Assembly: GCF_033153115.1 (NCBI RefSeq)
Contig: NW_026889761.1
Span: 8,308,001 to 8,372,000, forward strand
Direction: 5' to 3'
DNA from: Saccostrea echinata
Taxonomy: Eukaryota
DNA length: 64,000 bases
The notes beneath the pieces are model-generated. The model ran no database searches. It saw only the letters and a list, made by a program, of their open reading frames with translations, and had not been told where the DNA came from. The position numbers were made by a program, and so were the translations under genes. Of this stretch, positions 20-63,898 are shown in pieces (position 1 is the stretch's first letter; the number at the start of each line of letters is the position of its first letter).

Positions 20-110
20 GTCAGTTATACAAACATTCAAAGCTTGGACGATGGACAGGAGTTGCTGTTAAAAGTGTACAGCTTGAATGTCGCCCCAGTG
101 GAGAATCCAA
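20..110 (+). CDS. Exon 1 in window (LPD_N beta-barrel)
   Basis: cag| VSYTNIQSLDDGQELLLKVYSLNVAPVENP |gtgagt; phase 0 to 1. Confidence 0.85.
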
Positions 111-2563: not shown

Positions 2564-2625
<62 letters not shown>

Positions 2626-5600
2626 ATGTTATTAAAATGAATACATTAAAAATGTTGAATATTGTAATAGATAATTGTATAAAACACAACATTTTGCCAC
2701 TATTGCAAAAGCAGCATTTCTCGGTTTTTACTTTTCAATCAATCAATATTATGATTTGTATCTTTTTTCACAATACAGATTCACAAAATGTAATTACGCA
2801 GAATGTAATAATCCAATTTTTAATTGCATTTTCTGTTATTACATTTTGCGTTAATCTCCAAGCAAAATGTAATAACGCGAAACGTAATAATCCTAAAAGT
2901 TTGTTGTATCATTTTCTTTATTACATTCTTTTTTCATTCTTTATTTTCAAAAATACAACAGGAATTGGGATGAAATATCCTGAGATATTCCAGATTAATC
3001 CTCACCTATGTTACCAGGGGCCCATTGGATTTGGATATATTATATTATAGATGTGTCATATACATACAAACATAAACATACGTAAACATGTAATATTTTT
3101 TTAAATCTGAATAATAACATTTCTTTATATATCGTTATTACATTCTAAGTTGATCCCGAGACGCAAAATATACAATAACACAAAATGTAATAATCCCAGT
3201 TTATTACATTCTGCGTTCTTATTTAATTTTGTGTTGTAGGCTGTTTTAGGAAAAAAGTCCAAAAGTGGCGCACAAATTGCATGTATAGCTCTATGATCTA
3301 CCGCATATAATTTTGTTCGAATTGTACAGCTAATGTAAAGCAGTTTAGTTTGAATGCTTGTACATCTATAACAAATTAGCTTTTTAAAGAGAGCTTAGAA
3401 AGTGAGCAAGTGAGTTTTTCTTTTTCTGTGATATGGTTTTAAAGCATTAGGAAACTGAAATTTTGTTGAAGGAAAATGTTTTCAGCATTTATATGCTTTC
3501 CATAGGGAAAAACATCAGAAAAACAAAGAATGACAGGAAATTCAAAGATTATTCAGTCACTTCAGAATTTTTCCATTAATATGAAAATATAAACATACAG
3601 TGCTTTCTGTTGCTAGTATATGCAAGAGTTTATTGCGTTTTAGTTCTTCAAAGAAAGGTAACTCAGGTATAAACAATGAAATTAAATTGGATTTTCCACA
3701 AAAATCAAAGAAAGGCTTTTTCATATGTTGAAAACTTAAGAGTTTCATTATCTGGATTGCTGAACTTCTCCTCCAAAAAAAAAAAAAATTGCAGAAATTC
3801 CAGCTAAAAAGTACATTTGTTCATTTGTGCATATTTTGCATTGAAAAACACCAAATTTTCATCAAAAGTTATCTTTTTGAAACCTCAATAATATATTCTA
3901 ATTTTTTTGTCTTAGTACCTCTGATGGTACCTTCATTTTAGATTAAGAATATCTTGAAAAATTATATACAGGTATTGTATGGTGCGCATGACCATAAGAT
4001 GAAAATCAGCATGATAAAAATGTTCGACTAAAATAATACTGATCATAATTTTAACTTTGTTATACGAAGTTTTCACAGTTTTATGAAATTTTAAGGTACA
4101 ATAGATGAAAAGAGGGAGGATATGTAATAGGGTGTATATAAGACAATGAAAGACGGTTTATTAAATAGGGTATGTAAGTAGATTCACTCAAATCACAGCT
4201 CGATGACGAGCAATAATTAAGTTTGACGAGAAGGAAATTCTCTAATGAAAATTTGACTAAATTAATACTTAAATGTGTTTGTATTTGTAGGAGGGATTTA
4301 ACTACACTCATGAGTGCTAATTATAAAGTTGAGTTTTACTTATAAAATCATTGAAATTCATAATCTTCTAGGGGTCTTCGCCTCACCTGGGTTCCCCAAA
4401 AGGGCTTGCCTCTCAAAAAAAAACGCACTCTTTAATCCTTATTCCTGGATCCGCCCCCAATAGAGCATCATCTCGGGTTTTCCGTCAGTGGTCGGAAAAA
4501 ACACAGTTGTTTTCCGCTTGTCGGAAAGGCCCAGGAAGTTGCGATTCTTGAGTCACATAGGAATATTTTACTACCTATGAAGTATTTCTTCTGAATCAAT
4601 ATAAATCGGGGCAAAGTTATACCAGAAGTTGAAAGGCGAACTCTTATGTCGGGGTTAAGGAAGCTCTAAACACTAATGCAAAATGCTTTTTGGACTTCGA
4701 GAAAAATATATCATATAAGGTGCACATGTTCAGTGTATCTAGTTCATTTTTAGCATAGGGTACCTGTCTTATTTCTGCAGAAGAAATGTTCAAAGACAAT
4801 GAACTATTTGTGAACAGAAATCACTGTTGTTTACTTGCATCGGTAATATTAATGGAAATAATGTATTCAATTACTTAATCTCGGTCTAACATAACATTAA
4901 GAATACTTTAATTCATGAGAAATTGTGCCATTTACTGTAGATTCCCATTTATTCTATTTTTCTTCTAAGGGCAGATCACTCTAACTAAATAAAACTACCC
5001 TACAAATAGAACTCTTTAGTGTGCAGTGTTTAGAGCGTCCTTACATCATGCTTTCTTTCAAAGAACGAAATTAATTATGCCTGAAAATAAATTTGTACTT
5101 GTGTCAACAAAACAGGTTTTCTTTTGTGATATCTACACGAGGAGTGGTGGATCATGTATATCACCCAAAGGGAGAAGAAGACGAAGTGGTGGCCACCAAG
5201 AAAGGTCTAGCTTCCTTATTTGCCGCCAAACTTCATGAATTTGGTGAGGTACAAGAATATAAATTAAAGTTTTTAAAATCTAAGCCAAAAGAAATTGCTG
5301 AAATTGATACTTTTTAACAGATATCATTACTGTATAATAAGACGGTAGGTTGTACAGTTGTCATCTTGGATTTCAGGGTGCGCCTTGGTTCACACATGAT
5401 TTTAATCAATAATTACACTATAACGACCACGGTCGGGAGAGATCTAGCTTCAAAAATGATTGAATAATGCCCTTCAATCGTGTGAAACTAAATAAATGTA
5501 ATTGAAATACAAATTCTAACTCATGTTTATCTTTGTAAACTACAACACGGAAAAAATTGATCAACAGTCCAAAATTTTGTGTTTTCTTTTCTTTACCTGT

Positions 5601-8600
5601 ATGAAATAATACAAAATGATTCAAACTGTCATCATTTTAGAAAAGTTGTGCTATGTTACGAATGTTGATGAACTAGCAACCAGTAAGAATATAGCCAATA
5701 TAGGTCACCAATATTGCATTAGAGAGACTCAAATCATCATTTAGTATCAAGAATGTCATGCATTTCTGAAAGTCTACTTAAAGTCTAAACTTAAGATAAC
5801 ATGGATTTGTATTAAATTTATAGGGACAAAGTGGAATGAAATACGATAGACTCTGAACAAGTCATGAATTGGAAAAAGGGGATACTTTTTTTATAAGTTG
5901 ACTTAAACCTAATGCAGGTCTAGGCGGCCTCTGTTTTTGGAGGAAAGCTAGATTCAATATGGCGGCCAATTTTGTTTTACCATATGGAAACCGCATTGCA
6001 TTGTGAGATAGTTTATCCTCCGATTTTTGAGGATAACACAGGAGATTTTCAAAAGCCCCGTATCTAGCTACTTTTAATAAAAATGTGCAAGCACCAGAGT
6101 ACATGTAAATAAAAGTTCAAACATTAAACTATTGATTGTACGTGGCGATTTGAGATTCTATATCTAGAATTTTTACAATACGCTTCAAAGTTGACACTAC
6201 TTGCGCTTCATTTTTACTTAATATTTCTTGGTATTTTGTTTTATTTTTATGTTTTTCCCTATCAAGACAAATAAATAAGGACTTAAATAATATTACTTTC
6301 ATATTTTCTTTCAATTTAAAAATAGCGAGAAAAAAGGAAACTCAGAAGGAAAGTACAAATGTGATGTGTTAAAGGATTATTTATTAAAAGAAATAATAAT
6401 TGATTTTTCAAAAAATTGTTTATCAAAATTTGCAAACATATAAATACGGTACCGGAAAATCAGCCTCATTATAAAATTTTATCGTCTGGGACAGGTAAGG
6501 GTACTCATTGATAACTAAACATTAAACTGAATAACTTACTGACAGTAATTATAAGAATAATGTTATATAGATTTAACATCTAAATTTATCCATCATCATA
6601 TGAAATTTTACCTTTTTTTTGTTTTGGTTGAAAAATCAGTGACGGTTCATAAATGAAAGAGTTGCTTTATTTGTTTGTTTACGAGTTAACTGTCCTTTGT
6701 TTTGAAAGGTCTGGATGGTGGCGACACCTTTATCCTCTGTTTTCAGCGGATAAAATCTATCCTCCAAAAACGGAGGCCGCCCAGACCTGTTATATGTAAA
6801 TGTAAGGCTTCAAAGAATAGTTAGCAATGAACACCTGTTGAAGTGTTCAGATAAAATTGAGTTAAAATGGCAGATCGATCTAGAGAGAGGTCATTTTTTT
6901 CTCTTTACTTTGCCCCTCCCCTCCTTTTTTTCAAACAAAATTGATAACAAAAAATAATAAATTATCATTTTCTACGTTAAAAAAATTATAAAAAGAAATC
7001 TGCAGACCGACACCTTGAGGTTAGATTTACAGATCTAGAAGAGTACCACATGTGGATACCAAATGGTATTTTTAAAATAGGGTCTGTATCTAAAGTTGTA
7101 AACTTAGCGACCGTAACAACTTTAAAGACAGTTCTGATGACAACCGTCTCTGGACGAAACCGGTCAACAAAATAAATCTACTGCTACATTCTCACAAAGT
7201 GATGGTGATCTGTTTTATGTCTTTAAGTCTTTAAATATTTTTGTGTTGATAAAACAACCAAGCATTTACTGAGTTTGAATACTTTAAATTAATTAAGTAT
7301 TAAACACTGCCTTTCTGAGAGGTCTTGTAATCCTGGACGCCTCAAATTCTCTTATTGCCTTTGTCTAGATAATACTTGATGAAACTAGAAAAACGTGTCA
7401 ATTTTATTTACATTTAATTTCATGATTTACATAGATAATTTTTCACAGAAAAAGACTTATCTCTAACACATCATTTGCCAATCAAATAGAAAGTATATGG
7501 ATATTTATTCACAGCACGGTAGTTGAAGGTAATTAATTTAAGGCAACCAATCAGAGCTGAGTTAGGCACATGAACAGAATTTTGTAGTCATCATTTCTTA
7601 AATATAATGTTAAAGTACAGAAATATGTTTTAATACCAGAAAAAGTTATCGTGCTTTGTACTGACTCTCCGAAAGAACACGCCCGTCCAAAATAGCAACA
7701 CTATCCCTTAGCTACTTGAAGATCCTTCAATTAGCCATTGCTTTTTTATTTAAAATAGGTTAAAAAAACAGTCCTCTTACTTGGCAACATCTTTAAGTTT
7801 TACCAATGAATTAGAACTTTTAATAATAATACATTATAAAGTGCTTAATATTTATGTTGTTTAAGTTACACATTTTTCTTCTTCAGATTCCTGGAAATAG
7901 AAGCAGTGGTGCTTTTACTTACCATATTTTTGAAAATGGAACTGAAGGTTTGTCCTCATATACAGAGAAAGACTGATTCTCATGATTACAAAATGAAAGA
8001 CAGTATTACACATAGAATGCATATGCCTAAAAATCTTAAAACAGCATACTGTGAAATTATTAATTTTTGTGAGGGTAAAAATTCTTGTGTTTTTGTGGTA
8101 TGGAGACACTCACAAATTCATATGTTTCAAACAAAATGTTAAAATTTTAAACTACAGTATCATGTTTCTTCATCTACTACAAAATCAAATACCCTCAAAC
8201 CAATATCTTTAACTCAAACCAAAAAAAAATCTCTTACCCCATGAGAATAAATGATATACATGTACAGTAAAAGAAGGTCTGAATTGTAGCTTGATTTTGA
8301 ATATTTCTTATTATTCAGAGAGATATATTAAATGCCTGGTTTACAGAGAATTCATATTTAATGATAGGAGGGCACAATGCTACATACATGGTATCTCCAG
8401 TGAAAGAGGGTTTAGAGTTCAAAAAGACAAGGCTCCAACATCCTGTGAAGAATGCAAAGGCATCATTTCATAAGGTAAAATTATCATACAAATAAAATAA
8501 AGACTTACATATGTATTATAATGATTATCTTCAAACAATCTGGTTAAAGACTTGAAAATGCAAGAGATTTACTAATAATGACAAGGATGGGTGAGAATGT

Positions 8601-52700: not shown

Positions 52701-55700
52701 TCTACATTGAATACCATAATTGTTATTAAAAGTAAAATGAATCTTTCTGTCAAATTTTTAACTTAGAAACAAAACAGGCTGGCAGAAGAACCTCGATCAT
52801 GTTTAACACAAATGATGATAATGACAGGAAGGGATGTCGTGAATTTTATCCCAAGTCATTTTGGAACCTCAATCTGAGACTCACTGTTATTATTGTTCAT
52901 GTGACTTTCTTGCCTTTTGCTTTGATATGACATTATGAAATGTATTGAAGAAGTAAAAAAATAACAAAAAGATTATACTGATGACAGGCTGTACAATGAC
53001 TGTACCAAGATATATCCTAAGGAATGCAGAAGTAAAATCTTGACACTTCTAGACCAAATGTTTGTAGATATTTTAGAACTTTACTTGAAAGAGAAGCAAA
53101 GTTCAATTAGTAAAGGTAATGAAATAAGCATGGACTTTGCTTGACGTCACACAGTTCTGGATCAATAAGACACTGTTTGAGCATACCAAGCAGAAAGATA
53201 AAAAGCAATCTGAAACTTTGTTTAAAAAAAAAAAGATAAAAGATAGCATATGAATATATAGAACAAAAATCATTAAATGGTTGAATTGGAATAATTCATG
53301 CCTTTGACATAGAGATTTTATCTTTATACGATTTTTAATTCAGAGAAACATCATTATATTCAATATTTTGCTGGGGCATTTTTTGGAAAAGGACTACAAT
53401 TTTCTGAAACGGGCATCGCTATCACTATGAAGTTGCTATCGTTCATCATTGCCTTTAGTAACCTCAATTGTATTTTGTTATTTGCAAAATGGTATTTCCT
53501 GTAATATCTCTTAGATTTATATGTACCTTTTATAACATTGTTCATAATAAAAGCAATAACTGTTACAATAAGATTTTTACGTGATTGAAGATTGTCCAGC
53601 TGGGTTTGATGTTCGCAAAAATTTACCTCAAGAGCTGAAAGAGATGGTAACTTGTGAACAGCCTCCTAATTGTTGGGGAATTGAATGTTGTCTACAACTG
53701 ACCTTCAACATACCCCTAGGAGACACCAAAATAACCAGAAATATCCCATTCTGGTTCAAGCTAGATCCATGTGATTTCTCCTTAGACATAGGCTTTGGGA
53801 AAAAAATGCTTCTTAAAACACATTTATTAGAATATGAGTATGGTAGGTGAAATACATCATGAACTGCTTTAATTTTTAATCAGCAAGATATTTCATTGCA
53901 AATTCTTATAATGAATGATAAATTTTGTATATCTTTAAAACAGTCAATAATGTTAACTTTCAGGAAAGCAACACACTTTGTCACTGGGCTCAGGAAACTC
54001 TCCTCCAGTAGAAATCATGTAAGTTAGTTGATTGAAATTATTGCTTTCAAACTTAAGTTGGGTATATTTAGGAATAATCCTTACTATCTGTCTGTTTATA
54101 TGTCAAACTATGTATTTGCTACAAGTTTTTTTCAGTGAGAAACATTTAAAGTTCAAGCTTAAATTAAAATGATTCGTAAAAGGAATTTGTCCGCCATATT
54201 TGTATAATCCTGTCGTACTATCTGAGGTCCTTATATAAGCTGTTCACTTAGTTACGGTTCAGTGTAATCAGTGTCCACATGTGTAGACAGACGTATTCTA
54301 CATAGCTATTATGAAACATTCGATAGCGACAAAAGTAAGTATATGCTTCCTCATGGTAGGAGAGAAAGTTACAAAAGAAACTTGCAACAGTTGCACAGGC
54401 CAATGCAGTTCAAACACAAATACATATAAACTGATATAAAATGTAAGCAAAGGTAAAGTAAGATATCCAACACGAACATGTGTTGTCCATTCCATGCAGG
54501 TACCCGAGACAGAAAAGCATTTAAGGTGTAACGAATGTGGAAGACATACCCCAGTGCTGATATTGAAGATAGGAAATCTAATCTGGCGTATGCCTATTTA
54601 TCTTCGTCTTTAACCAGAAAAGTTATAATAACCAGTGTGTTTGTCATGTATCTAGCTGAAGTCAATTAGAACAAAGTGAAGGATACTTGGATCAAAATGA
54701 TCTAAGTGTTAGTTTTGATGAACTCATGATACAGTTGAACTTCCACATTTTGAACCCTGATATGCCAATATTATGAATATGTCGCAGTAAATCAGTCCCA
54801 CTACTATATGAGTTTGATTTTCATCTCTATTGTCACTTGGATATCTCATAGGTTTATAAAGAACTGTATGTTGTTTAGTGAGAAATAGGCAAGAATGTCG
54901 TGAAAAGGTGAGTCAAGAGGAAAAAAAATCTGCAAGTTTTTATTTAAAGGTATATGTCATATTTCTTGGTTACATTTCTTCCAACCATAAAGTACACATA
55001 CATTTTGAAAGAGTTTGCTCTGATATTGGCAACATTTCTTGTAGTCAGCCAAAATCTTTGTAGATCTTTGGACAATCCATTATTTTAGATGTATGATTAT
55101 TATATTTTCTTTACTAAGTCACAGTATTATCATTATAGCTTGTCTGTATTTTAAGGGTGTATAGGGATTCTGTCTATATATTCTAGTAAAAGAGGTCTGA
55201 CTAGACTAATGTTTGTGCAGAATTCTTTTCTTTAATTTTTTGTTTGACATAGTCTTAAAAGTACAGTCAAACCTCTATCTCAAACCCTATGGGTTCCAGA
55301 AAGAACTTCAAGATATTTGATGATTTGAGATTTCGAGGTTAAAATACATAAAGAAAAAGAAACTTTTAACTCACTTCGACACACTTATCATATCTGAGAT
55401 ATCAAAGTTAAAGATAACCAAGTTCAAACGTATTTCAACTTGACAAAAGTGTTTTGAGATGGTACCCTCTTGATTCAAGTTTGAAAAGTATTATTTTATA
55501 CTTATAAGGTTCAACTTTAATTTTACCTAATATTCAGAAGTATTGATGACTTTTATTTTAAAAATCTATGATAATTATACAGATATAGGATAGAGCAAAT
55601 TCCAGGAAACAAAGGCTTTTTTGTGGATTTAAGAATACTCATTTGCTTTGACTTTGATGTGAAAATTACATGTATTCCAACAAATGATGGACTTCATATA

Positions 55701-58700
55701 CTGAAAAATCAGGAAATCCCACTTTGTGATCAGAGACAGTTGATTGATTTTAGCAGTGAGTATGCTTTGCATGATGGTTTGCTATTATATTTTTAATGTA
55801 GCAGTGCTCTAACTAAATATTACAGTATACCCTACTTTGACCAAACTTGTAAAAGAAATGCAACCTACGATCCATATTACCTGTCTTCCTTTAGATTCTG
55901 CATTTGATATGTATTTTGTAGACTAGTGAACATGTTCATATTTACGAGCAGGTCCATTGCAAATATCAAAAATCCAAGCTTTCTTCGGACAAGAATGAAT
56001 GATGGCTTGTAAAAATATGCAGCATTTTAGATATACCCACATGTTTTGATATAGCCCATTTAAAGCTCTCTAGTACTTTGGGAAAATGTGTAGTTTACAA
56101 TTCTTTCAAAGATTTTTCATTGACTGATTGGATGAGGGAGAAGTCACTGAATCTTAATGAACAGTTGGCAGAGGGTGCCGTGATGTTACTGCTGGACCAG
56201 CTCAATTTGACTGATTTCTTTCAAAGATCCAAGTGTGACAGGACAAGGATGCCATACATACCTTCTATACAAGGGATCCATAATAGTATGTAAATGAAAG
56301 TTTTAGTATCATGCTTCCAACTGTAAAGTCTATACACCATATAGACAAGAGATTGATTATAATGCATTTTTTAGGGAAATGATTAGAAAAAAATTAAATA
56401 GATTATGATCTTCAAGTATGCAGCCTTACAACAGAAAACACTTTGAAACATATCTGGATGATAATTAAACATAAAGTTATAGATTTAAAAAAAAAAAAGT
56501 AGATAAATAAACATGCACGCATCAAATTTTTTTTTAACAGAATGTCCAAAGACCATTGTTTACCTGCCATCCAAGATTCCTGACCCAATGTCCTGCTACA
56601 TACCAGGCTACTGTACAGGGATAGAGTGTTGCGCTGACATTCCTGTTCTTGGTCTTGGACTACATGTGTTTGCTTTTTTGGACTTGGACAAACTTGAACT
56701 CCGTATAGGAATGGAAAACATTAAAGAGACTATAAAACTAAATAACTATGTGTGGGGAGAGGTCAAAACTTATAGTGTGGCTGAAGGTCTTATCAAACTA
56801 AAGTAAGTTGATGTTCCTATTTAGCGGAGGTAAAGAGTTTATAAACTTATCTGCTCGGTGGAAATGTAAGTTAAACAATGATGTTGCGTCTACAAGTATT
56901 TATAGCAGTTATGAATGAAATAGATATCCAAAGCATGAACTTTTATCCTTTGTAATTTTGAAACATTTAATTGCTTGAAGTTAAAGAATCAAAATCCATT
57001 TGAACATGCAAAAGTTTTGATAAATAGCATAAACTAAACATGTCGTACTTTAATATTTTTACAACCATTTTGCATTTGTAATGCTAGTTTGAATATTAAA
57101 TTCCTCTTTTAGGTTAAGTGTGAAGCCAATAACAAATGAGAATGTGTATGTGTTCAATGTACATGCCTCTGTGTGTCTGAATGGAGGACAATGTTCAATT
57201 GACATCCCAATTTTAAGGAATACCAGGTTACCAACAATCAGAGCCATAATCACTGGAGAAAGCAAGAGTATGTAAAGAACGTATAGATACTGTAAAAGGA
57301 GAAATTTTAGCAAGGTTGTTTAGATCACTAAAATTTAAAATTCCTCAATGGAGGTTACCTTATCTTTCCATGTATCACAAGATCGCTAAAATTGAATACC
57401 GATTTTTTTTTAGGGAAAAGCGCTAAATTTGCATCCCGCTAAAAATTCCACTTATACAGTATATGCCTATGAAGTTCAATGTTTACTGCGAATTCTTTTG
57501 TCAAATTTTAGCATTTTGTTATTAGATTGTTTTACTGTATCACACAAAAATTTTATTACAGTATTGTGGGTACCTTATGAAAAACAGTATTCTAGTTATT
57601 CTAGTACAGGGATTTCTGCTTTTATATAAGCAACAAAAAATAGGATAAACAATTTATTATTTATTTTGTACAGACTTTTCATTTACAAATTGGCTTCATG
57701 AGATGAACATAACACAGGATAATCTGAGAGATAATGCAAAGGCTCTTCTGGTTCAACAGCTCGGTATTGACCAGTACCTGTTAGACACACCATGTGATTC
57801 ATCAAGAGATTTGTATTATCCCAGTAGCCATGGCTGGAAAAATGGTTAGTTAATAATTGAGCTTATATAATTTGTCATTTGGAGAGAAAAGATGTAGAGA
57901 ACATCAGTTTTAAACAGAAAATTAAATTCAATGTCTGTTCATTACAGAGTGTCCTTTGGACTGGGTGGTTTTACCCCAGATTACCTCAGACAAAGTGAGA
58001 TGCAGCCTTTCCTCAAACTGTACAAGGATAGACTGTTGTGTGGACTTCAGTCTCCTAAATCTCAAACTCCATTTCTACTTACACTTCGATAGGTGTAATT
58101 ATGTCATATCTGGAGGAATTGAAAAGAAAACATTCAGTTATGGACTACTAGATTTCAATAGTTTTTGGGGTATAGTATTTCTGTAATATTAAATAAAAGA
58201 AAATATTCATTAAGTGATATATATATTTTCATTTCAAAATATGTTGTAGATGAGTCAAAAAAGGGTAGTATGGTTTACTGGTATTGCCAAGCCATGTATG
58301 CTATTGTCGGGGCTTGTCTGTAACAGGGGAAGAAGTTGTTTTTCATGTTCATCTTCATTTCTCACTTGGGTCTGTTTTCAGATTGCTTTTTTTAAGGATT
58401 CAATAACTGTCTAATTTTTGTTTTTATGATGTGATCAAGCAATTGGCTTACGCGAGGATTTGCATAAACGCCGAAGGCAAGCCAAATCCTTGATCATCAT
58501 CATAAAACCGAACGATAAGACAGTTTTCTTATATTTACATGCTCTTCATTCTGAAATTCATGTGCTCGAAGCCCCGCCTACTTTCCCTCACCCTCCGCCC
58601 GCACCTGATTTTTTTAAACGATGCCTTTTGATGAACCAGTAGCTGTAGAAATCAAGTATTTTTACTATTTGTAGTTTTATCTCAAACAAAGAAATTTTAA

Positions 58701-61700
58701 AAATGTAAATGTTTCAACATATAACTTATTCACAAAAAACTTATACTGTACATTACTGCCTTTGGCAGCTATTGTCTATCTACCTGTACTATGTGTGCAC
58801 TGAAGTGATGGGAAATTTCCTATTGCATGTGCACTGACTGAAAGTATTCAGGACATGTAAAATAAGGAATCTAGCTGCAGTTTCAACAGTTTTTCACCAA
58901 GAATAATTATTTCATTTCAAAGGGTGTAAGACTATTCATCTGCAGTATACAGTGTATGCCCAAGATGACAATCTATATATCAACATCATCCTAAAAGCTA
59001 AATGATGCCACTGGAATTAAAGATGGTTATCATGTTATTTTATTGATCAATGTTCATTTTCTGAAACATACAATCAAAAAACTAAGGATATGCGATTTTA
59101 TCTGTATACCGGTATATCATGATTTTTTTTTATTAGGCGATACGTATCGTGATACGGAGACTAAAATACCGGTATTTTATATGTAATTATAAATAACGGA
59201 AATAATTAATTTTTTTGTTCACACTCTTGAATAACAATTTTAGGAATTGTAGAAATGGTGTTAAACAACGGCATCCTAACATCCAAACATGCTTTATTAA
59301 TATATAAATAAAAATGAAAAAAGTGAAGTTTTGTTTTCACACTACATTTGTTGAAAAGTCATTGAAATTCATTTAAAATCATAGTAAAAATTATGCGTAA
59401 ATATATCATGATATTATCGTGATATCTTTGGGGGAAATCGTGATATATCGCGATAAATTATTTTTGCCGATACCCATCCCTACATGTATCTATGATTGAC
59501 ATCATGAAAAGTCTATGATAGTTTAATTTAAATAATTCCTGTGTTGTCTAGGTAGAGAAGTCTCCATGAATATTGGAAATGTTGTCTTCATCAAGTAAGT
59601 GAATACTAGGAAGTTGTCTGTATATTATTTTCTCTACATATTTACTTTGTTTTATGTTAAGTATCCTTTCATCTGCCCCTATTTGAAGATTCGGTGGAAT
59701 ATAGTTTTTGCACTGTTCGTCCGTCTGTCAGTTTGCTGTTTGTTCACTAAAACTTAAACCTTGCCCATAACTTTTGATTGGCTGGATCTATGGCTTTCAT
59801 ATTTCACAAGTGTATTCCTTGTGACAAGACCTTTCATTGGGTACCAATATATTTGACCTCTTTACGTTGAAGTTTGACCCACTTTTGCAAAAATTTTCCA
59901 AACTTTAACCATGGTCATAACTTTTGAACAGGTGCTAGAACTTTCATACTTTTTTGATAATTGTGAGATGTTATATTTTATGTACTGTAACAGTAAAATA
60001 TTAATTTCCATGCAGTCAGATTTGCTTCACCATATCCATACCTCAATTTATTTTGGAAATAAAAACTTCGACCTTGACCTTTTGAAAATCTTTAACCTTT
60101 GCCTTTACTTTTGAACAGTTGGTACTAGGGCTTTTATATTTCACATATGTATATCTTATGACAATGCCTTCCCCTAGGTACCATTAATTTTGACTACTTG
60201 ACCGTGACCTAGCAGTTTGATTAACTTTTTAATTTAAAAACTTTACACATGGCCATAATATTTGAATAATTGGTGATTGAGCTTTCATATTTCTCAAGAA
60301 TATTTATTGATTCTGTTCCTTTCTTTGGGTAACAACATATTTGATTATTTGACCTTGGCCTTGGAGTTTGACTTGCATTTGAGAAACATTAACCTTCTCA
60401 GAAAGCTGTCAGACTGGGGCATCAGTGTTTCACAAACACATCTAGTTCATTATGAAGATTTAATTCATAAAACATTTTTTTAATATAGATTTAAAGCCAC
60501 CCAGCTGGAAGTATCTAAGAAATATGTCTTAGACATGGGCATTTCTGTGTGTTTAGAACCTGATGTCTGTGATTTAGATATTCCTATATTAAAAGAAGTC
60601 CTTATTCCAATTCTTAATTGTGACCTCACCATGGATTTCAATGTCAAAGGTGAGATTTTTTGATAAAATAAAATGCATTATCCACATATGTAAGTAAGTG
60701 GGGACACATATTGAAATTTTTTATATTGCCATCTTAATTATTCTTTGATTAAAAACTAAAAGTAGAAATGTTTTCCCCATAGATTTTTCTCTCGTGAAGT
60801 GGATGAATGAACAAGGTCTTTCATTTGATGGAAGTTTGTCTACGGCTCTGGCTGCTGCTTTGTTTAAGAAGCTGGGAATTGATTCTTTCCTGAAAAATCC
60901 AGCATGTGAAAGGACAGAAGCACCGTACAGTGTCAACAAACAGGACAACAGTGGGTGGTCCTCAGGTAGAAAATTTCTGTACAGTTTGATCACAATTAGT
61001 AGAAAAAAGATTGACACTGGCTTAAAATTTGGACTTTCCAGCAGTGTTGTCTAGAAAATAATTTCGGTTGTCTTCAATAATTGATCTTATTTTTTTGTGT
61101 GCATTACTTTCTTCCTTTATCAATTTTTGAATATGCATGTGGAACATTGTGTATCAATTAATTTGTTATAAAGTTTTCAATGAGAATGTACTACTAGTAT
61201 GAATAAAATGTTATGATTTTGTAGACTGTCCAGCTAAAATGTCTATGCCAAAAATAAGAGGAACAACCGCCTGCTTTATTAAAAACACATGTACAGCTAT
61301 CAAATGCTGTGTGGAGGTTGGAAAAGTTAGCAGAACTTTTGAGATTGAATTGGATATTGACTTCTGTAACCAGAAACTGACATTTGGTATAGAGAAGCTT
61401 ACAGAAACTATTTCTCTCCAAGGATTTGAGTATGGTATAAATTTCAGATTTTAATTTTATTTTTCCATATTGATTGATTTGTCACTTCACTTGAAAAAAA
61501 TACAATTTATAAAGTTTTTTATATATAGTATACACATGTATGTATTCCCAGTGTTTTTCCTTTATTTCAAAGTAAAGGGTTTGGGATCAATTGTAAAAGG
61601 CTAGGGTTTAAGGTTTATGAATAATATCTCTGCGAGTCTTATGACAGTTATGTTTTAAATTTGGATTTCTTAGCGGCATTTATATCAAGTGGTCATTTTG

Positions 61701-63898
61701 GCCATTTTAGGGTCATTTTAGGGAAAACACCGAATTCCATTCCATATGTTTGAGCAATAATGTGTAGCCCAAACTTTTTGTAATTGAAAATTAGGACTCT
61801 ATAGAAAGATTCCTTATGTCCTAAAGAAAGGTAAGATAAATGCTACAACCAGGGAAAATTTGTTACAAAGGCAAACTTGCTGCTGCTGCATGATATAAGT
61901 TAACTCTTCCTATAAAATTGTAATATGTTATGTTTTATGTACTGTAACAGTAAAATATTAATAATCCATGCAGTCAAATTTGCTTCCCCGTATCCATACC
62001 TCATTTTATTCTGCAAATATTTTGGTATTTGTCCCCCACTTTCATTGAAAGTGAGAGATAGTAATTTGGTTCCGTATGCCTGTCAGTCCATCTGTCTAGC
62101 TTTATATCTGTCTGGTGAAACAGTTTCATTTCCGAAGATATCTCAACGTTTGAGACCTTTAAGGTTTTGCATTGAAATTTTACATCACAACTCTCTATGG
62201 CCTAATGAAGACCTCTATTGATTTTGAAGTCAAAGGCCAAAGTCATTAATTCATTCTGTTTGTGTGTAATAAGGCCTCTCCAAGTTTTTTCTTTGTTTAC
62301 GTCGACTCTAAATTCGAAAACCGATCTTTCTATCTGGAACACACAAACCAAAAAAAAACACAACATTTTAAGCACAACTCTAGAATTTTTCATCATCATT
62401 TGAAAATTATCTTTGCATTGTTTTAACTAAGTTAAACTACTAGTTTATTGAATAAAACTTTTTTTGGTTCACCACTTAAAATATGAGATGTCAATCCCAG
62501 AAGAGTAAATTGTGTTTCAAAGATTTGTATTTGTCAATTTTGATTTATGTTTGTTTTTAATTTAATATCCTCAAAACCAATCCGCCTGTGGACGCTAAAC
62601 ATAGGAAAAAACCTGAAACGGCCTATGTTTTTTTCCGGGCAATTTCTCAAGAGGCCTTTTAGCTTTTGCAATGAAATTTTATATCAGAACTCTTTATGGC
62701 TAAAGAAGATTTTAAGGTCAAAGTTCAAGGTCAAAATCATACTTTACAAATAAAATTTTCCAGATTTTCTTGAAGCTTTCATCAATAGAATTAAATATCA
62801 CAACTCGCTTTTATTTAAAGAAGATTTCTATCAATTTTTTAAGTCAAAAGGTCAGAAGTCAAGGTCATAAATTTATATGCTCGTTATCTTTCTGTGTGTG
62901 ACACTTCCGTTTCCAGACAATATCTTAAAAAGTCTTTGAGCTGTTGCAATGAAATTATATATCACAACTTACGGTTTAAAGAAGATCTCTTTCGATTTTT
63001 AGGCCCAAAGGTCAAATTCATACATGGCAAAAACATTTTCCAGAAGCTTAGGATCATTTTTCTGAGAGCTTTCTTCGATGAAACTTAAAATCACAACTTC
63101 CTATGGCTTAAAAAAAATGTATAAATTTTAAGGCCAAGAAGCTGAAATGTCAAGGTTGACTATTTTTCTTTCTCCAACACCAAACTTTTTCCAGTTCTTC
63201 CACCCTCTTCTTTTTTCCTTATGTGAGAGACACAGCTTGATTACTTCATAATGTGCAAAATATAAGAAGGAATATAAGGAAACCTGACTCAAGGTATATT
63301 TACCATGCCACCAAGAAAAAGGGATGAAGATTCAGAAATAAATATTTGACCCAAAGTTTATTTATAAGGTCACCAAATAAAAAGGGATAAGAAGTCGATT
63401 CAGAAATCAATATTTGATCTACCTCTCAGGATCTCAAGTTACTTTTTATTTATATACACACAAATAAAATTCTCCTTCATCAGCTTATAAAATTATATTT
63501 ATATTGGAGTGTTAAGAAAACAGTTTATTAATTTTTGCAGGAAAAAGAAAGGAGGTGGTCATCATGGGTGTTGTCAAGATGTGGTAGGTTTTTTGAAGGA
63601 AAAACTTGTTTCTTGGGGTTAAAGATGTAATTTTGTTAAAATCAGTGTTAAGATTTTCATTAATTTTCGTTCATGTCTGGAAATTGGAAGATACCTGTGG
63701 AGCAGTGAACAAGAATATTTTATCTATTCAAAAGGTACACAATTTGGGACAATGAAGGGGAAGGTGTTTATGTAGTAACAGTAGATCTAGCAATCTGCTT
63801 TGAAGATGGAGGTGATTGTCTCATCAACACAAATATCCTAGATCAATTCAAATTGTCTAAACAGGCATGCATTTGGGGAACATCATTCTTGAGCCAAG
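20..63898 (+). CDS. Partial (5'- and 3'-open) 53-exon gene: giant mosaic protein with LPD_N/MTP-like lipid-transfer module, helical region, LECT2-like M23 domain, two SAP motifs and at least 6 Cys-rich repeats
   Basis: Manually spliced GT-AG exons give one open frame of about 2,500 aa, with phases consistent except at the exon-16 acceptor. Diagnostic motifs: KKGLASLFAAKL (cf. MTP KRGLASLFQTQL), LETLGNAR, HKGLD/HIH/DPTKYL, two SAP-like segments. Many N-x-S/T sequons suggest secretion. Confidence 0.9.
247..280 (+). CDS. Exon 2
   Basis: tag| (N)TKGIDNDFSK(W) |gtaagg; phase 1 to 2. Confidence 0.85.
904..1052. other. Assembly gap (N run)
   Basis: Run of N inside intron 2. Confidence 0.99.
2564..2621. 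repeat. Compound (TA)n(GA)n microsatellite
   Basis: Direct reading. Confidence 0.95.
2780..3240. mobile_element. Degenerate MITE-like element with repeated CGCAAAATGTAATAA motifs in both orientations
   Basis: Multiple aaatgtaataa / ttattacatt motifs; ends not resolved. Confidence 0.45.
5116..5248 (+). CDS. Exon 3 (MTP/vitellogenin-like N-sheet motif)
   Basis: FSFVISTRGVVDHVYHPKGEEDEVVATKKGLASLFAAKLHEFGE; resembles the MTP segment ending KRGLASLFQTQL. Confidence 0.9.
5915..6789. mobile_element. Non-autonomous DNA transposon, hAT-like (CAG..CTG ends)
   Basis: About 30-bp TIRs: CAGGTCTAGGCGGCCTCTGTTTTTGGAGGA / TCCTCCAAAAACGGAGGCCGCCCAGACCTG; no clear TSD. Confidence 0.75.
7887..7947 (+). CDS. 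Exon 4
   Basis: cttcag| IPGNRSSGAFTYHIFENGTE(G) |gtttgt; phase 0 to 1. Confidence 0.85.
8368..8474 (+). CDS. Exon 5
   Basis: GHNATYMVSPVKEGLEFKKTRLQHPVKNAKASFHK |gtaaaa; phase 1 to 0. Confidence 0.85.
9036..9118 (+). CDS. Exon 6
   Basis: tttag| TMIYQAYLETIHSVLIEENFTSPKTPP(G) |gtgaga. Confidence 0.85.
10964..11115. other. Assembly gap (N run)
   Basis: Run of N inside intron 6. Confidence 0.99.
11284..11342 (+). CDS. Exon 7
   Basis: FDPFHGMRKVKAVNDFSKE |gtaatt; phase 2 to 1. Confidence 0.8.
11479..11600 (+). CDS. Exon 8
   Basis: EYPTMSYTSQGKLSFLTRHVDKRKWMKPSEQLLKSPIHIGT |gtaagt. Confidence 0.85.
11869..12344. repeat. Left subterminal array of the palindrome AGAGATATCTCT (more than 20 copies, about 20-21-bp period)
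   Basis: Direct reading; one further copy at about 14967, beyond the nested insertion. Confidence 0.95.
12345..14953. mobile_element. 2.6-kb non-autonomous CACTA/EnSpm-like element nested in the IS3EU-like array
   Basis: TIRs CCCAGGTAGCACAAAA / TTTTGTGCTAGCTGGG; 2-bp TSD CT (its removal restores AGAGATATCTCT); subterminal AAAACATTTT/AAAATGTTTT repeats. Confidence 0.8.
15830..16700 (+). mobile_element. Degenerate Helentron/HINE-type element with Cg170-like units
   Basis: TCTCAAGAACCACTGGGC and GTTGAAACTT units; ends in a CATGGGCCT motif like other copies in the window. Confidence 0.55.
16193..16356. mobile_element. Tc1/mariner (pogo/Tigger-like) MITE
   Basis: TA|CAGT...ACTG|TA; related copies near 50443, 54731 and 55263. 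Confidence 0.7.
17780..18575 (+). mobile_element. Degenerate Helentron-type element with TGACCTTGACC/AAGTTCAAGGTCA tandem units
   Basis: Same unit family as 39945-40450. Confidence 0.5.
19231..20216 (-). mobile_element. Non-autonomous Helentron (HINE) carrying an oyster Cg170-type satellite array
   Basis: Units of about 165-185 bp starting TTGAACAAA at 19358, 19523, 19708 and 19880; GACG/GACA microsatellite; GCTCAGGTGAGCTAAAAA end with a matching GCTCACCTGAG at the other end. Confidence 0.85.
21250..21590 (-). mobile_element. CvA/pearl-like HINE element
   Basis: AACTAGATGTG start, GACGGAAT microsatellite, hairpin-like GGCGGGGGCATAAAAA end. Confidence 0.65.
22668..23048. repeat. Right subterminal array of AGAGATATCTCT (about 18 copies, about 21-bp period)
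   Basis: Direct reading. Confidence 0.95.
23569..23659 (+). CDS. Exon 9 (start of LPD_N alpha-helical domain)
   Basis: Long T-tract acceptor; VKHTPKHLNLSECRKDIIANLTCIENQPEQ(G). Confidence 0.85.
23839..24135 (+). repeat. Tandem duplication of about 150 bp (2 copies)
   Basis: aataaatt..gtca..tttccaaagt.tggatacaaatttataga... repeated at about 23840 and 23991. Confidence 0.8.
24228..25070 (+). mobile_element. Degenerate Helentron/HINE copies
   Basis: TTATTAATTCACCTGAG start; Cg170-like units; internal GCTCAGGTGAGC. Confidence 0.55.
25249..25360 (+). CDS. Exon 10
   Basis: SPVAGLCFRNIVNQLLGLPDEEIVKIAEFYFSILQP(T) |gtaagc. Confidence 0.88.
25512..25686 (+). CDS. Exon 11
   Basis: VFKYQRAIENMVDAYGAMNTELSEKLLAEKVLL...APSE |gtaagt. 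Confidence 0.9.
25817..26307. mobile_element. hAT-like MITE
   Basis: CAGGGTT..AACTCTG ends flanked by GAACATAA / GAACATGT (imperfect 8-bp TSD). Confidence 0.45.
26411..26600 (+). CDS. Exon 12
   Basis: VMLKTLEDAVIH...CMLALGAVSHKLFKEG...LGLH; LALGA helix typical of LPD_N. Confidence 0.9.
26832..27040 (+). CDS. Exon 13 (RQKR site; LGNA motif)
   Basis: PWKYRQKRAVM...ILLETLGNARLDESYDYIL...WIKRAGCHALRKY; the LGN motif is conserved in Vg/apoB/MTP. Confidence 0.92.
28183..28301 (+). CDS. Exon 14
   Basis: AAETLLYSALYDEDQSVRYEASVLYMAHPKGK; resembles the LPD_N EVRIAA helix. Confidence 0.9.
28648..28874 (+). CDS. Exon 15 (RSRR site, beta-sheet start)
   Basis: EESSFDNTT...HQRSRRNVWEGIRFRLEAPGVDWRKTLGTKDIGASFGVIMINLLDLAV |gtaaat. 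Confidence 0.88.
29276..30785. mobile_element. Non-autonomous DNA transposon with long TIRs built of CGACAATATGTAC motifs (possibly MULE-like)
   Basis: About 80 bp at the left end (split by the MITE) matches the reverse complement of 30700-30785; no TSD found. Confidence 0.7.
29340..29736 (+). mobile_element. hAT (Ac-type) MITE
   Basis: TAGGGATG..CATCCGTA ends; perfect 8-bp TSD CTGCACAT. Confidence 0.88.
31838..31966 (+). CDS. Exon 16 (5' boundary uncertain)
   Basis: MKIRVHDEAYARIHVGILGFNYDFFIARVCFKGGTEYSFNILQ |gtacat; the only in-phase acceptor is a weak AAG ending at 31778. Confidence 0.75.
32314..32490 (+). CDS. Exon 17 (amphipathic helical region)
   Basis: GNEMKKIVDIALNFSKKLAEIVNGIKAGVQLFKDLISG...IPNK |gtaagt. 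Confidence 0.9.
33467..34263 (-). mobile_element. HINE/CvA-like element with about 126-bp tandem units
   Basis: Repeated AAACTGAGCTAAACACTAATTT..AGTTCAAGGTCAAAGG units; GACAGA microsatellite; GGCAGGGCATAA end. Confidence 0.7.
35365..35830 (+). mobile_element. 3' part of a Cg170-type Helentron
   Basis: Tandem TCAAGAACCACTGGG..GTTGAAACTT units ending CTCAGGCGAGCC..GGCTCATGGGCCTCCTGTTT. Confidence 0.7.
35881..36039 (+). CDS. Exon 18
   Basis: VVSLVEKSTEALAKIGHYDPEDLPPEFKPTINFVHKVSKLFSDIKADVMGFVN. Confidence 0.9.
36806..36945 (-). mobile_element. 5'-truncated copy of the tRNA SINE at 39483
   Basis: (GATT)n tail plus near-identical ACGTCCCATTTGAGAATTTTTCACTCAT...CCGGTGAAGGGCTT. Confidence 0.85.
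37727..37869 (+). CDS. Exon 19
   Basis: AVEQSIKVVIPHQAKVIFESIRDIIEGFSKILGNPKAALQSIGKGVF(S) |gtaaga. Confidence 0.9.
38749..39207 (+). mobile_element. CvA/pearl-like HINE element
   Basis: TTTTTATGCCCC start, GTCG/GTCT microsatellite, two units of about 140 bp, GGGCATAAGTGTTTCACAAACATCTCTTGTT end. Confidence 0.8.
39274..39344 (+). CDS. Exon 20
   Basis: IFQSIRIILKQKNTVQEACFFLR; phase 2 to 1. Confidence 0.85.
39483..39833 (-). mobile_element. Full-length tRNA-derived SINE (likely Meta/Deu-domain bivalve type)
   Basis: Minus-strand A box TAGCTCAGCTGGTAGAGC, B box GTTCGAATC, Deu-like TAAAAACCGAGGCCCAGTGT..GGCACGATAAAAATCCC, (AATC)n tail, 11-bp TSD ATGATATTGAT. Confidence 0.88.
39945..40450 (+). 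mobile_element. HINE-type element with about 150-bp tandem units
   Basis: GTCCGTCT microsatellite, then TGACCTGAGGGTGTGTCATGACCTTGACC units. Confidence 0.7.
40717..40757. repeat. (TTA)n microsatellite
   Basis: Direct reading. Confidence 0.95.
41416..41582 (+). CDS. Exon 21
   Basis: EKPYWFDVEKLLLEYQPLADQAFASLKSAGDRWINEKIEDAEDRVKKFTKGKFAL. Confidence 0.9.
41984..42150 (+). CDS. Exon 22
   Basis: RDLRREAVRTIETLQALLMDPFNDLLGLADNFVKQYSSVFGLIQKIKDAYTTLKE(G). Confidence 0.9.
42301..42484 (+). CDS. Exon 23 (M23/LECT2-like domain, HxxxD motif)
   Basis: ...GGGCDSGFYPSSLGGGRREYRHKGLDLLVERGDP; cf. LECT2 HQGVDILC. Confidence 0.92.
42664..42816 (+). CDS. Exon 24 (M23 domain core)
   Basis: IVAPFGGTITVDSEDSKTVIISSEGGSLRGITIFITNIEP; cf. 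LECT2 VYAPFTG. Confidence 0.92.
42844..43140 (+). mobile_element. 5' part of a Cg170-type Helentron
   Basis: TTATTAGCTCACCTGAGC..AGGTTCAGGTGAACTTTTCTGA head. Confidence 0.75.
43379..43622. mobile_element. Small MITE with an internal 16-bp perfect hairpin
   Basis: AACCTAGC..GCTAGGTT ends; stem CTGTAGCTCTCTGCTT / AAGCAGAGAGCTACAG. Confidence 0.55.
43981..44157 (+). CDS. Exon 25 (M23 domain, HxH motif)
   Basis: CAAGQPIGTATRSDCDNHIHLAFQKDGGSYVDPTKYL; cf. LECT2 HVHIE...DPTAYL. Confidence 0.92.
45009..45156 (+). CDS. Exon 26
   Basis: NETIAANVIVGLMGEGVQNKDPTITNTDKAVPIKFPESNANPDDTIAIK |gtaagt. Confidence 0.88.
46500..46637 (+). CDS. Exon 27
   Basis: KPSGLFAKVHSSLGSALDFDTDNDQCPVVMGTQSSVGKRSLSLGK; phase 1 to 1. 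Confidence 0.85.
46953..47104 (+). CDS. Exon 28
   Basis: IFSKLLKTADKFLEKFNIRRLKFGTIMDFLDKFGMTESKAAMARVMREIK. Confidence 0.9.
47422..47560 (+). CDS. Exon 29 (SAP-like motif 1)
   Basis: TACRNPYEMTEDQLVNELTEMGKDTKGSREQLIERLVQLD fits the SAP pattern. Confidence 0.9.
47671..47898 (+). CDS. Exon 30 (Cys-rich repeat 1A)
   Basis: CPLL...YCMFDSMCLGLECC...FDPC. Confidence 0.9.
48831..48897 (+). CDS. Exon 31 (repeat 1B)
   Basis: FEGELRSGNKLEILGGLEAVI(R); phase 1 to 2. Confidence 0.85.
49058..49221 (+). CDS. Exon 32 (repeat 1C)
   Basis: YNIFKG...GLCSFDDSENCLVFVNLLDNAVLPIPTCLPDG. Confidence 0.9.
50159..50286 (+). CDS. Exon 33 (helical linker)
   Basis: DFKKLFMKEALYKHVKKQGKSIIQEVTSKLTDEFLKLLRIEK. Confidence 0.88.
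50745..50886 (+). CDS. Exon 34 (SAP-like motif 2)
   Basis: PDKMTLGQITADLVRRGLSTSGSRSELNERLTMDD; RGL..SG.R.EL..RL is the SAP signature. Confidence 0.9.
51054..51290 (+). CDS. Exon 35 (repeat 2A)
   Basis: CVNITL...KDCLRIDAWVD...LDPCSFVVQIGFEKY...LLNYNW(G). Confidence 0.9.
51535..51577 (+). CDS. Exon 36 (repeat 2B)
   Basis: 43-nt exon TNELAEISSNVKV; phase 1 to 2. Confidence 0.85.
51664..51818 (+). CDS. Exon 37 (repeat 2C)
   Basis: YSIGRNVDEGVYILKFGLMICLSSQVDCILDEYLFTDLKIPIPLC. Confidence 0.9.
52067..52158 (+). CDS. Exon 38 (linker)
   Basis: NGSFAGLLEKIGGKMTEEAFELVLKKFDLN. Confidence 0.85.
52279..52327 (+). CDS. Exon 39 (linker)
   Basis: DVITSGACPGIPLTPE |gtaagt. Confidence 0.82.
53591..53842 (+). 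CDS. Exon 40 (repeat 3A)
   Basis: CPAGFD...TCEQPPNCWGIECC...LDPCDFSLDIGFG...LLEYEY(G). Confidence 0.9.
53964..54018 (+). CDS. Exon 41 (repeat 3B)
   Basis: KQHTLSLGSGNSPPVEI; phase 1 to 2. Confidence 0.85.
55583..55755 (+). CDS. Exon 42 (repeat 3C)
   Basis: YRIEQIPGNKGFFVDLRILICFDFDVKITCIPTNDGLHILKNQEIPLCD. Confidence 0.9.
56112..56285 (+). CDS. Exon 43 (linker)
   Basis: FSLTDWMREKSLNLNEQLAEGAVMLLLDQLNLTDFFQRSKCDRTRMPY. Confidence 0.9.
56541..56802 (+). CDS. Exon 44 (repeat 4A+B fused)
   Basis: CPKT...SCYIPGYCTGIECC...NNYVWGEVKTYSVAEGLIKL; no intron at the YxWG position. Confidence 0.9.
57113..57267 (+). CDS. Exon 45 (repeat 4C)
   Basis: LSVKPITNENVYVFNVHASVCLNGGQCSIDIPILRNTRLPTIRA. Confidence 0.9.
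57674..57844 (+). CDS. Exon 46 (linker)
   Basis: FSFTNWLHEMNITQDNLRDNAKALLVQQLGIDQYLLDTPCDSSRDLYYPSSHGWKN. Confidence 0.9.
57948..58169 (+). CDS. Exon 47 (repeat 5A)
   Basis: CPLDW...RCSLSSNCTRIDCC...FDRCNYVISGGIEK. Confidence 0.9.
59083..59482 (-). mobile_element. Second, inverted copy of the hAT MITE family at 29340
   Basis: Colinear reverse-complement similarity including GATACGTATCGTGATACGGAGACTAAAATAC; ends CATCCCTA. Confidence 0.85.
59552..59594 (+). CDS. Exon 48 (repeat 5B)
   Basis: 43-nt exon REVSMNIGNVVFI; phase 1 to 2. Confidence 0.85.
59672..60447 (+). mobile_element. HINE/CvA-like element
   Basis: GTCCGTCTGTC microsatellite, TTTGACC..GACCTTG units, GGGGCATCAGTGTTTCACAAACACATCTAGTT end. 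Confidence 0.75.
60489..60649 (+). CDS. Exon 49 (repeat 5C)
   Basis: FKATQLEVSKKYVLDMGISVCLEPDVCDLDIPILKEVLIPILNCD. Confidence 0.9.
60783..60965 (+). CDS. Exon 50 (linker)
   Basis: FSLVKWMNEQGLSFDGSLSTALAAALFKKLGIDSFLKNPACERTEAPY...GWSS. Confidence 0.9.
61225..61434 (+). CDS. Exon 51 (repeat 6A)
   Basis: CPAK...ACFIKNTCTAIKCC...IDFCNQKLTFGIEK...GFEY(G). Confidence 0.9.
62030..63160 (+). mobile_element. Degenerate HINE-type element with AGGTCAAAGGTCA units
   Basis: Repeated GCAATGAAATT..ATCACAACT..TAAGGTCAAAG units. Confidence 0.5.
63541..63583 (+). CDS. Exon 52 (repeat 6B)
   Basis: 43-nt exon KRKEVVIMGVVKM(W); phase 1 to 2. Confidence 0.85.
63735..63898 (+). CDS. Exon 53 (repeat 6C); gene continues beyond the window
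   Basis: YTIWDNEGEGVYVVTVDLAICFEDGGDCLINTNILDQFKLSKQACIWG |gtgtgt; no stop codon. Confidence 0.88.

Follow-up and report, generated by a model that had tools for sequence, protein, structure and literature searches.

The window, i.e., the whole stretch of 64,000 nucleotides of Saccostrea echinata DNA analysed here, is probably the 5′ third of one plus-strand protein-coding gene, whose predicted product would be a secreted multi-domain protein of ~8,000 residues. The domain order is well supported: a signal peptide, an LPD_N region with a short beta-sheet, ~300 residues of long helices, a degenerate M23 domain, a linker, and a repeat region. The last of these begins with the order SAP-A-B, which occurs two times in all, and continues as C-A-B units, for a total of 34 disulfide-rich units of ~200 residues, an order that is likewise well supported.

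The exon chain and the extent of the gene

Exon coordinates were guided by the Saccostrea cucullata orthologue P0082 (RefSeq model LOC134241150, 4549 aa, partial); the exons of the window were searched singly, and natural database proteins of the family stood in for the joined product. P0082 is collinear with the plus strand at per-exon identities of 85–95% (75–94% for linker exons 27–29). The match starts at an ATG that precedes the window by 16.8 kb and reaches residue 4549 at 99,122, where the model stops at the end of the S. cucullata contig. Exons 2–54 lie within the window, i.e., 53 exons from 20 to 63898 with 7,537 coding nt for ~2,512 aa. These are exactly the limits of the single spliced frame of at least 2,500 aa proposed in the first-pass annotation, and the exon blocks named there were recovered as well (16 lipid-transfer, 6 helix-rich, 3 M23, and 2 SAP exons). 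Splice junctions were tested from exon 1 to the first exon past the window, and 52 of 53 could be placed, all of them GT-AG with compatible phases. The only exception was the junction 52326 to 53587. The length difference relative to the orthologue was 0 aa at all placed junctions except four: it amounted to 1 aa at three of these and to +9 aa at the fourth, where the acceptor of exon 17 is uncertain. GC content was 39.0% in exons vs 32.1% across the window (host assembly: 923 Mb, 32% GC). Even the long open reading frames (ORFs) are short and dispersed over the window, which fits an intron-rich animal gene, and Pfam detected no family in the non-gene ORFs of the window (e.g., 25807–26280; 1621–2067 on the minus strand).

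Two assembly gaps interrupt the letters of the window:

904-1052: assembly gap 1, in the intron between exon 3 (247-280) and exon 4 (5116-5248)
10964-11115: assembly gap 2, in the intron between exon 7 (9036-9118) and exon 8 (11284-11342)

Across the first, exon 3 joins exon 4 in phase 2 at 0 aa off the orthologue. P0082 residues 87–96 first seemed absent near this gap, and an intron search located them in the 34-nt mini-exon at 247–280, which has AG and GTAAGG borders and encodes these residues exactly. Across the second, P0082 residues 225 and 226 are contiguous, with the donor AGG/gtgaga and the acceptor ag/ATT. Since both gaps are intronic and their flanks canonical and phase-matched, the frame is uninterrupted.

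Both ends of the gene lie outside the window. The ATG is found 16,781 bases upstream, in an exon 1 that occupies window coordinates −16781 to −16617. It is preceded by an in-frame stop, and the exon encodes a canonical LPD_N barrel start and ends in a GTAAGT donor. As read from the sequence, exon 1 also encodes a predicted signal peptide, with a ~20-residue hydrophobic stretch followed by a small-residue cleavage motif. At the other end, a TGA at window coordinate 160,005, 96 kb downstream of the window, overlaps a poly(A) signal, and a second poly(A) signal lies 40 nt beyond. The locus thus measures ~177 kb; its ~150 exons and ~8,000 coded residues are sums over the orthologue map, i.e., the P0082 stretch to residue 4549, and the 18 further repeat units of the remaining array.

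The introns hold several repeats. Two satellite arrays (11858–12345 and 22667–23059) consist of ~18–23 copies each of a 21-bp unit built on the palindrome AGAGATATCTCT, and yield spurious open frames when read as protein. A ~65-bp element at 313–388 occurs in >70 copies at 85–95% identity on many contigs, often in adjacent inverted pairs, and looks like a MITE. Other intronic tandem repeats are located at 14582–14943 (118 bp), 19347–19924 (172–184 bp), 33727–34170 (141 bp), and 40102–40435 (147 bp).

The lipid-transfer head and the LECT2-like M23 domain

Upstream of the SAP motifs, the window encodes the following parts:

20..28301 (+): LPD_N barrel and helical domain, exons 2-15, collinear with P0082 residues 55-584
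20-110, 247-280, 5116-5248, 7887-7947, 8368-8474, 9036-9118, 11284-11342 (+): LPD_N exons 2-8
11479-11600, 23569-23659, 25249-25360, 25512-25686, 26411-26600, 26832-27040, 28183-28301 (+): LPD_N exons 9-15
28648-28870, 31790-31966 (+): short, highly conserved beta-sheet region, exons 16-17, with many invariant columns
32314-32490, 35881-36039, 37727-37869, 39274-39344, 41416-41586, 41988-42150 (+): helix-rich linker, exons 18-23, P0082 residues 706-1002
42301-42484, 42664-42816, 43981-44157 (+): LECT2-like M23 domain, exons 24-26, three boundaries in phase 0
45009-45156, 46500-46637, 46953-47104 (+): linker from M23 to the first SAP motif, exons 27-29, P0082 residues 1168-1319

The first-pass annotation had read exons of the N-terminal part as LPD_N, and both profile and fold searches bore this out. 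When scanned singly, the window exons gave a best Vitellogenin_N match of only E 0.13; at the level of whole proteins, Pfam Vitellogenin_N (PF01347, cut-off 24) passed on the orthologue P0082 (30.9 bits) as well as on the family members P0052 (34.0) and P0040 (29.9). For structure prediction, the N-terminal part was modelled with AlphaFold as C. virginica P0098 (849 aa), using a 19-sequence family alignment; the fold evidence therefore comes from a family member 50–77% identical, not from the window's own product. The P0098 model comprises a beta-barrel at residues 30–280 and 17 helices at 296–572, mostly at pLDDT 76–94, a range that covers nearly all of residues 30–570. Strands at 585–702 form ~120 residues of sheet with a pLDDT of 35–56, followed by long helices at 709–841 (~50–58 for 709–811, lower past 811). 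In a Foldseek search against the PDB, ranks 1–11 were all large lipid transfer proteins (LLTPs: MTP, vitellogenin, lipovitellin, and apoB100) at E 1.4e-19 to 5e-8, the best being MTP (6i7s, 1.4e-19), followed by honeybee vitellogenin (3.8e-15), lipovitellin (5e-15), and apoB100 (4.6e-13).

What usually follows LPD_N in this superfamily (DUF1943 and vWD in the classic members, according to the first-pass annotation) was missing: Pfam scans of P0082, P0080, P0052, and P0040 detected no DUF1943, DUF1944, DUF1081, or vWD. The only domains found in these four proteins were Vitellogenin_N, HEAT_2, M23, and SAP, with one further sub-threshold match (SbsC_C on P0040). In LLTPs, large C and A beta-sheets close the lipid cavity. 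Given a putative cavity sheet that is short and of low confidence, and the absence of DUF1943 and DUF1081, lipid loading is not assured. Within the family, conservation is highest in the LPD_N barrel, the helical domain, and the sheet that follows, where many columns are invariant.

MTP (6i7s, 8eoj) is the top structural match of the N-terminal 850 residues, at only 13% sequence identity. Both proteins combine a beta-barrel, a helical horseshoe, and a sheet, and neither carries DUF1943, DUF1081, or vWD. However, MTP is an ER-resident protein of ~890 aa with PDI as its partner, whereas the oyster protein runs on for another ~7,000 residues through M23, SAP, and repeats. An MTP-like end after LPD_N was ruled against, as the frame continues in phase through the helix exons into M23. 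Vitellogenin/lipovitellin and apoB/apolipophorin (1lsh, 9ens, 9bd1, 9e9r) share with the oyster protein the signal peptide, Vitellogenin_N, and the N-terminal fold, and the oyster product is, like apoB, very large and predicted to be secreted. There are three differences: vitellogenin and apoB carry DUF1943/vWD and DUF1081, respectively, which are absent from the family proteins scanned; the bulk of the oyster protein's C-terminal part consists of Cys-rich modules in place of amphipathic beta-belts or helices; and M23 and SAP are not known from LLTPs described so far.

The M23 domain gave a more uneven signal. Single window exons yielded no Pfam M23 match among the M23 exons and no match among PDB sequences. 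The orthologue P0082 was borderline with Pfam M23 (PF01551, cut-off 28.7) at 27.6 bits, and five family members passed: P0057 (43.0 bits), P0056 (45.3), P0023 (32.0), P0021 (31.1), and P0040 (28.8). For the M23 and SAP domains of the first-pass annotation, the first SAP motif and the M23 of these five members passed, and the second SAP motif and the M23 of the orthologue stayed under the cut-off. With a profile of the family, LECT2 was the top PDB sequence match, a weak one (E 0.003 over 46 residues), and the matched region includes a Cys-and-Tyr lead-in that is absent from the bacterial enzymes.

In the window copy, the HxxxD (H-K-G-L-D) and HxH (H-I-H) motifs are present, and the third catalytic His is replaced by Asn in an I-T-N-I strand, at a position that we take to be that of LytM H260. 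Asn occupies this position in eight of nine aligned family proteins (the exception being amphioxus P0089), and the His of HxxxD, i.e., the first Zn ligand, is absent in seven of the nine. Together, the Asn at the third His and the frequent loss of the HxxxD His make a conserved peptidase activity appear unlikely. LECT2 itself (5b0h) is, as predicted for the oyster product, a secreted protein of animals with an M23 fold, and it has the same Cys-and-Tyr lead-in before the GVD motif; the window copy keeps the Zn-ligand motifs, and the full catalytic set is missing in both. LECT2 differs in being a free single domain of ~130–150 aa, with three disulfides and a Zn site, whereas the M23 here is internal to a giant protein and most family members have lost the first Zn-ligand His. 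Bacterial LytM/M23 proteins such as EnvC, NlpD, and SpoIIQ, which have lost catalytic residues and serve as binding or activating modules, were weak PDB matches; they are periplasmic proteins of bacteria, and the similarity is marginal (E 0.2–0.4). Glycopeptide recognition by the oyster domain would be only an analogy.

SAP motifs and the Cys-rich repeat array

Beyond the linker, the exons of the window encode two SAP motifs and the first repeat units:

47422-47560 (+): SAP motif 1, exon 30; Pfam SAP (PF02037) 28.5 bits for 47422-47568, cut-off 23.9
47671-47898, 48831-48897, 49058-49221, 50159-50286 (+): repeat 1, as A module, mini-exon, B module, and a further exon
50745-50886 (+): SAP motif 2, exon 35; Pfam SAP 18.7 bits, under the cut-off
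51054-51290, 51535-51577, 51664-51818, 52067-52158, 52279-52326 (+): repeat 2, as A module, mini-exon, B module, and two further exons
53587-53842, 53964-54018, 55583-55755, 56112-56285 (+): repeat 3, as A module, mini-exon, B module, and C module, with GT-AG junctions
56541-56802, 57113-57267, 57674-57844 (+): repeat 4, as A, B, and C modules
57948-58169, 59552-59594, 60489-60649, 60783-60965 (+): repeat 5, as A module, mini-exon, B module, and C module
61225-61434, 63541-63583, 63735-63898 (+): repeat 6, as A module, mini-exon, and B module, cut by the window end
64663-64838 (+): C module of repeat 6, past the window end

SAP motif 2 is recognised by a SAP profile built from the family (E 2.5e-16), and Pfam SAP passes on the orthologue P0082 (25.6 bits). 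Among 21 family proteins matched by the family profile, 14 have two SAP motifs and the remaining seven, several of them partial, have one. These proteins span bivalves, gastropods, and amphioxus, and every SAP directly precedes an A module. The best solved relative of the window's SAP segment is that of THO1, SAF-A and MKL1 being further SAP proteins. These known SAP proteins are nuclear nucleic-acid binders, whereas the two SAPs here stand behind a signal peptide; that the SAP motif of a secreted protein binds nucleic acid would be a guess.

We built module HMMs for the A, B, and C types from the window's own exons and used them to follow the array. The first-pass annotation had counted at least six Cys-rich repeats; six A modules lie in the window. 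The whole array stretches from 47,667 to 159,971 on the plus strand and comprises 34 A, 33 B, and 30 C modules, which succeed one another as A-B-C without a break. The last A module runs into the terminal TGA, and the 124 kb searched beyond the TGA at 160,005 yielded no further module. Within the window, HMM E-values were, e.g., 3.7e-14 (A) and 1.7e-11 (B) in repeat 1 and 6e-11 to 3e-21 in repeat 3. Intron phases are constant in each unit, i.e., phase 1 for A, phase 2 for the mini-exon, and phase 1 for B and C. A modules share 15–49% pairwise identity (mean 29%) and six conserved Cys, which points to an old array under constraint; the same mean identity rules out recent duplication or an assembly artefact as its source. 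Open frames and conserved Cys throughout the 97 modules at such low identity, like the raised GC content of the exons, argue against a chance series.

It is unlikely that part of the distal array goes untranslated, with alternative splicing or polyadenylation giving shorter isoforms and some distal units decaying. Gene models of other species, at 1.8 to 5.3 kaa, and a LINE-type reverse transcriptase in an intron of the array would be in line with this. On the other hand, all 97 repeat modules keep an open reading frame, with good HMM scores and conserved Cys through the last unit, and only one terminal stop accompanied by poly(A) signals was found, past unit 34. The retroelement itself (window coordinates 66502–69270, plus strand) is inserted into the intron that follows repeat unit 7 and runs in the direction of the gene; its two ORFs, of 259 and 606 aa, carry RVT_1 and zf-RVT.

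Pfam assigned 33 A modules to no family. An AlphaFold model of module A4, based on 33 paralogous rows, is a five-strand antiparallel meander with a pLDDT of 80, for which fold searches gave no significant match (Foldseek best E 0.48; VIA-align best Z 6.6, below a background of 7–8). The A module probably represents a fragment of a larger domain to which B also belongs, so that the lack of a fold match is no evidence for a new fold. Two candidate identities were rejected: the C module as a degenerate SAP (hhalign probability 1%), and DUF4773 for the repeat, an atlas lead with a score of 0.80 and no Pfam support on the 33 A modules.

Functional proposals can be inferred for these parts by analogy. 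The product would enter the ER like other LLTPs, and its head would bind a hydrophobic ligand, be it lipid or something else. The M23 domain would act as a non-enzymatic binding module, as do LECT2 and the bacterial LytM factors. The repeats would make up an elongated, cross-linked arm outside the cell, by which the N-terminal head is displayed or anchored. The role in haemolymph, immunity, or clotting suggested by the first-pass annotation is compatible with the evidence, and a structural role in matrix or mucus appears about as likely.

The product might also be an extracellular glycoprotein with a structural task in mucus, egg coat, matrix, or clot, a possibility that we hold only tentatively. 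Its LPD_N head would then serve assembly or receptor binding instead of lipid carriage, and the repeats would carry the function. The repeats make up ~85% of the mass, as 34 disulfide-rich units with symmetric phase 1-1 boundaries like those of shuffled extracellular modules, their number varies between species from ~5 units in Mytilus to 34 here, and the putative cavity sheet is short. In addition, some invertebrate LLTPs are clotting proteins, e.g., the crustacean clotting protein. Against this, the head is the most conserved part of the family, which argues that it is functional, and Pfam detected no vWD, TIL, EGF, or mucin-like domains.

A family of unnamed proteins and its paralogues

Searching the first M23 exon with phmmer against 1.8 billion representatives returned only 68 proteins, and the long ones share the combination of domains. 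The architecture of the first-pass annotation recurs in bivalves, gastropods, and amphioxus, always in unnamed proteins. A Potamilus protein of 3134 aa carries Vitellogenin_N, M23, and SAP, and a Batillaria protein of 1262 aa carries Vitellogenin_N and M23. A Branchiostoma floridae protein of 2018 aa carries M23, SAP, and PAN; its N-terminal residues correspond to the sheet of exons 16–17. Word-based searches added further unnamed members from Sinanodonta, Mizuhopecten, Mytilus (four species), Pinctada (two genes), Saccostrea, Babylonia, Nucella, and Solemya, and three more Branchiostoma proteins. LPD_N and M23 (with or without SAP) are joined in models of Potamilus, Sinanodonta, Mizuhopecten, Mytilus, Pinctada, Batillaria, and Branchiostoma; the Babylonia and Nucella models match the N-terminal 1,000 residues. 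Overall, the family covers bivalves, gastropods, and amphioxus, i.e., two phyla.

LLTPs are conventionally divided into three architectures, namely those of vitellogenin, apoB/apolipophorin, and MTP. A 2024 survey of mollusc LLTPs recognised the classes Vtg, Apo, and MTP only (PMC10799875), and in the searchable literature we found no description of an LLTP with M23 or SAP. Calling the protein an uncharacterised class, as in the first-pass annotation, is fair, although public databases already contain the architecture in predicted proteins, hypothetical or uncharacterised by name, from at least a dozen species. A far more specific proposal would make it a fourth LLTP class common to molluscs and cephalochordates, acting as a lipid-loaded scaffold of ~8,000 residues, with a LECT2-like domain that binds microbial cell-wall peptides and is ancestral to the free LECT2 of vertebrates, and with repeats of a new disulfide-rich fold. 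Taken as a whole, we consider this proposal improbable.

Within the S. echinata genome, seven loci, including the present one, have an LPD_N helical exon 4–37 kb upstream of an M23 exon on the same strand. The six others are as follows:

C45, 5841358-5857358: paralogous locus, LPD_N helical exon upstream of M23 exon
C45, 5492765-5516198: paralogous locus, same arrangement
C9, 3562928-3579308: paralogous locus, same arrangement
C9, 4063391-4100474 (minus strand): paralogous locus, same arrangement
C54, 40295054-40299884: paralogous locus, same arrangement
C54, 40920581-40925067: paralogous locus, same arrangement

At these six loci, the LPD_N helical exon is 67–90% identical, and the M23 exon match contains one stop codon in four of the six, which may mean that some copies are pseudogenes or that an exon border has shifted.

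The order conserved at these loci bears on the question of whether the window holds one gene or more. An MTP-like LPD_N gene of ~850 aa could have been merged by prediction with one or more adjacent genes encoding M23, SAP, and repeats, and the N-terminal-only models C. gigas P0097 (856 aa) and C. virginica P0098 (849 aa), which stop after the helix exons, would fit such a division. Yet these two models end past different exons (37.9 kb and 36.0 kb), both in intron read-through and without a conserved stop. We read them as truncated models, with real short isoforms being possible. Furthermore, the splice sites at the proposed boundary are canonical and keep the phase, and the orthologue map shows neither an ATG nor a signal-peptide exon belonging to the downstream part alone. 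In addition, >10 models from two phyla have the parts joined, and the same order recurs at all seven paralogous loci. We thus judge two or more adjacent genes to be very unlikely, and treat the locus as a single gene.

Together with its copies at seven loci of the genome and its relatives in other molluscs and in amphioxus, the locus shows a further conserved LLTP architecture that was overlooked by surveys based on BLAST with vitellogenin. The LECT2-like M23 in an invertebrate and cephalochordate protein provides a lead on the origin of the vertebrate orphan LECT2, and the large Cys-rich repeat without a Pfam family is offered for structural work. The oyster gene is also a candidate plasma or matrix protein, which current Crassostrea annotations badly fragment: as the Crassostrea models are truncated to ~850 aa, most of the protein would escape any expression or proteome study that relies on them, and reads and peptides of the family gene may be mis-assigned in such studies.

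Finally, six more Vitellogenin_N loci, separate from the LPD_N-M23 family, were found elsewhere in the genome (on C9, C10, C86, and C54). On the minus strand of C9, the interval 2115980–2197006 holds three tandem genes, with Vitellogenin_N at 83–86 bits on one exon and two of them near-identical in spacing; this cluster probably represents the canonical vitellogenin or apolipophorin genes of the oyster.
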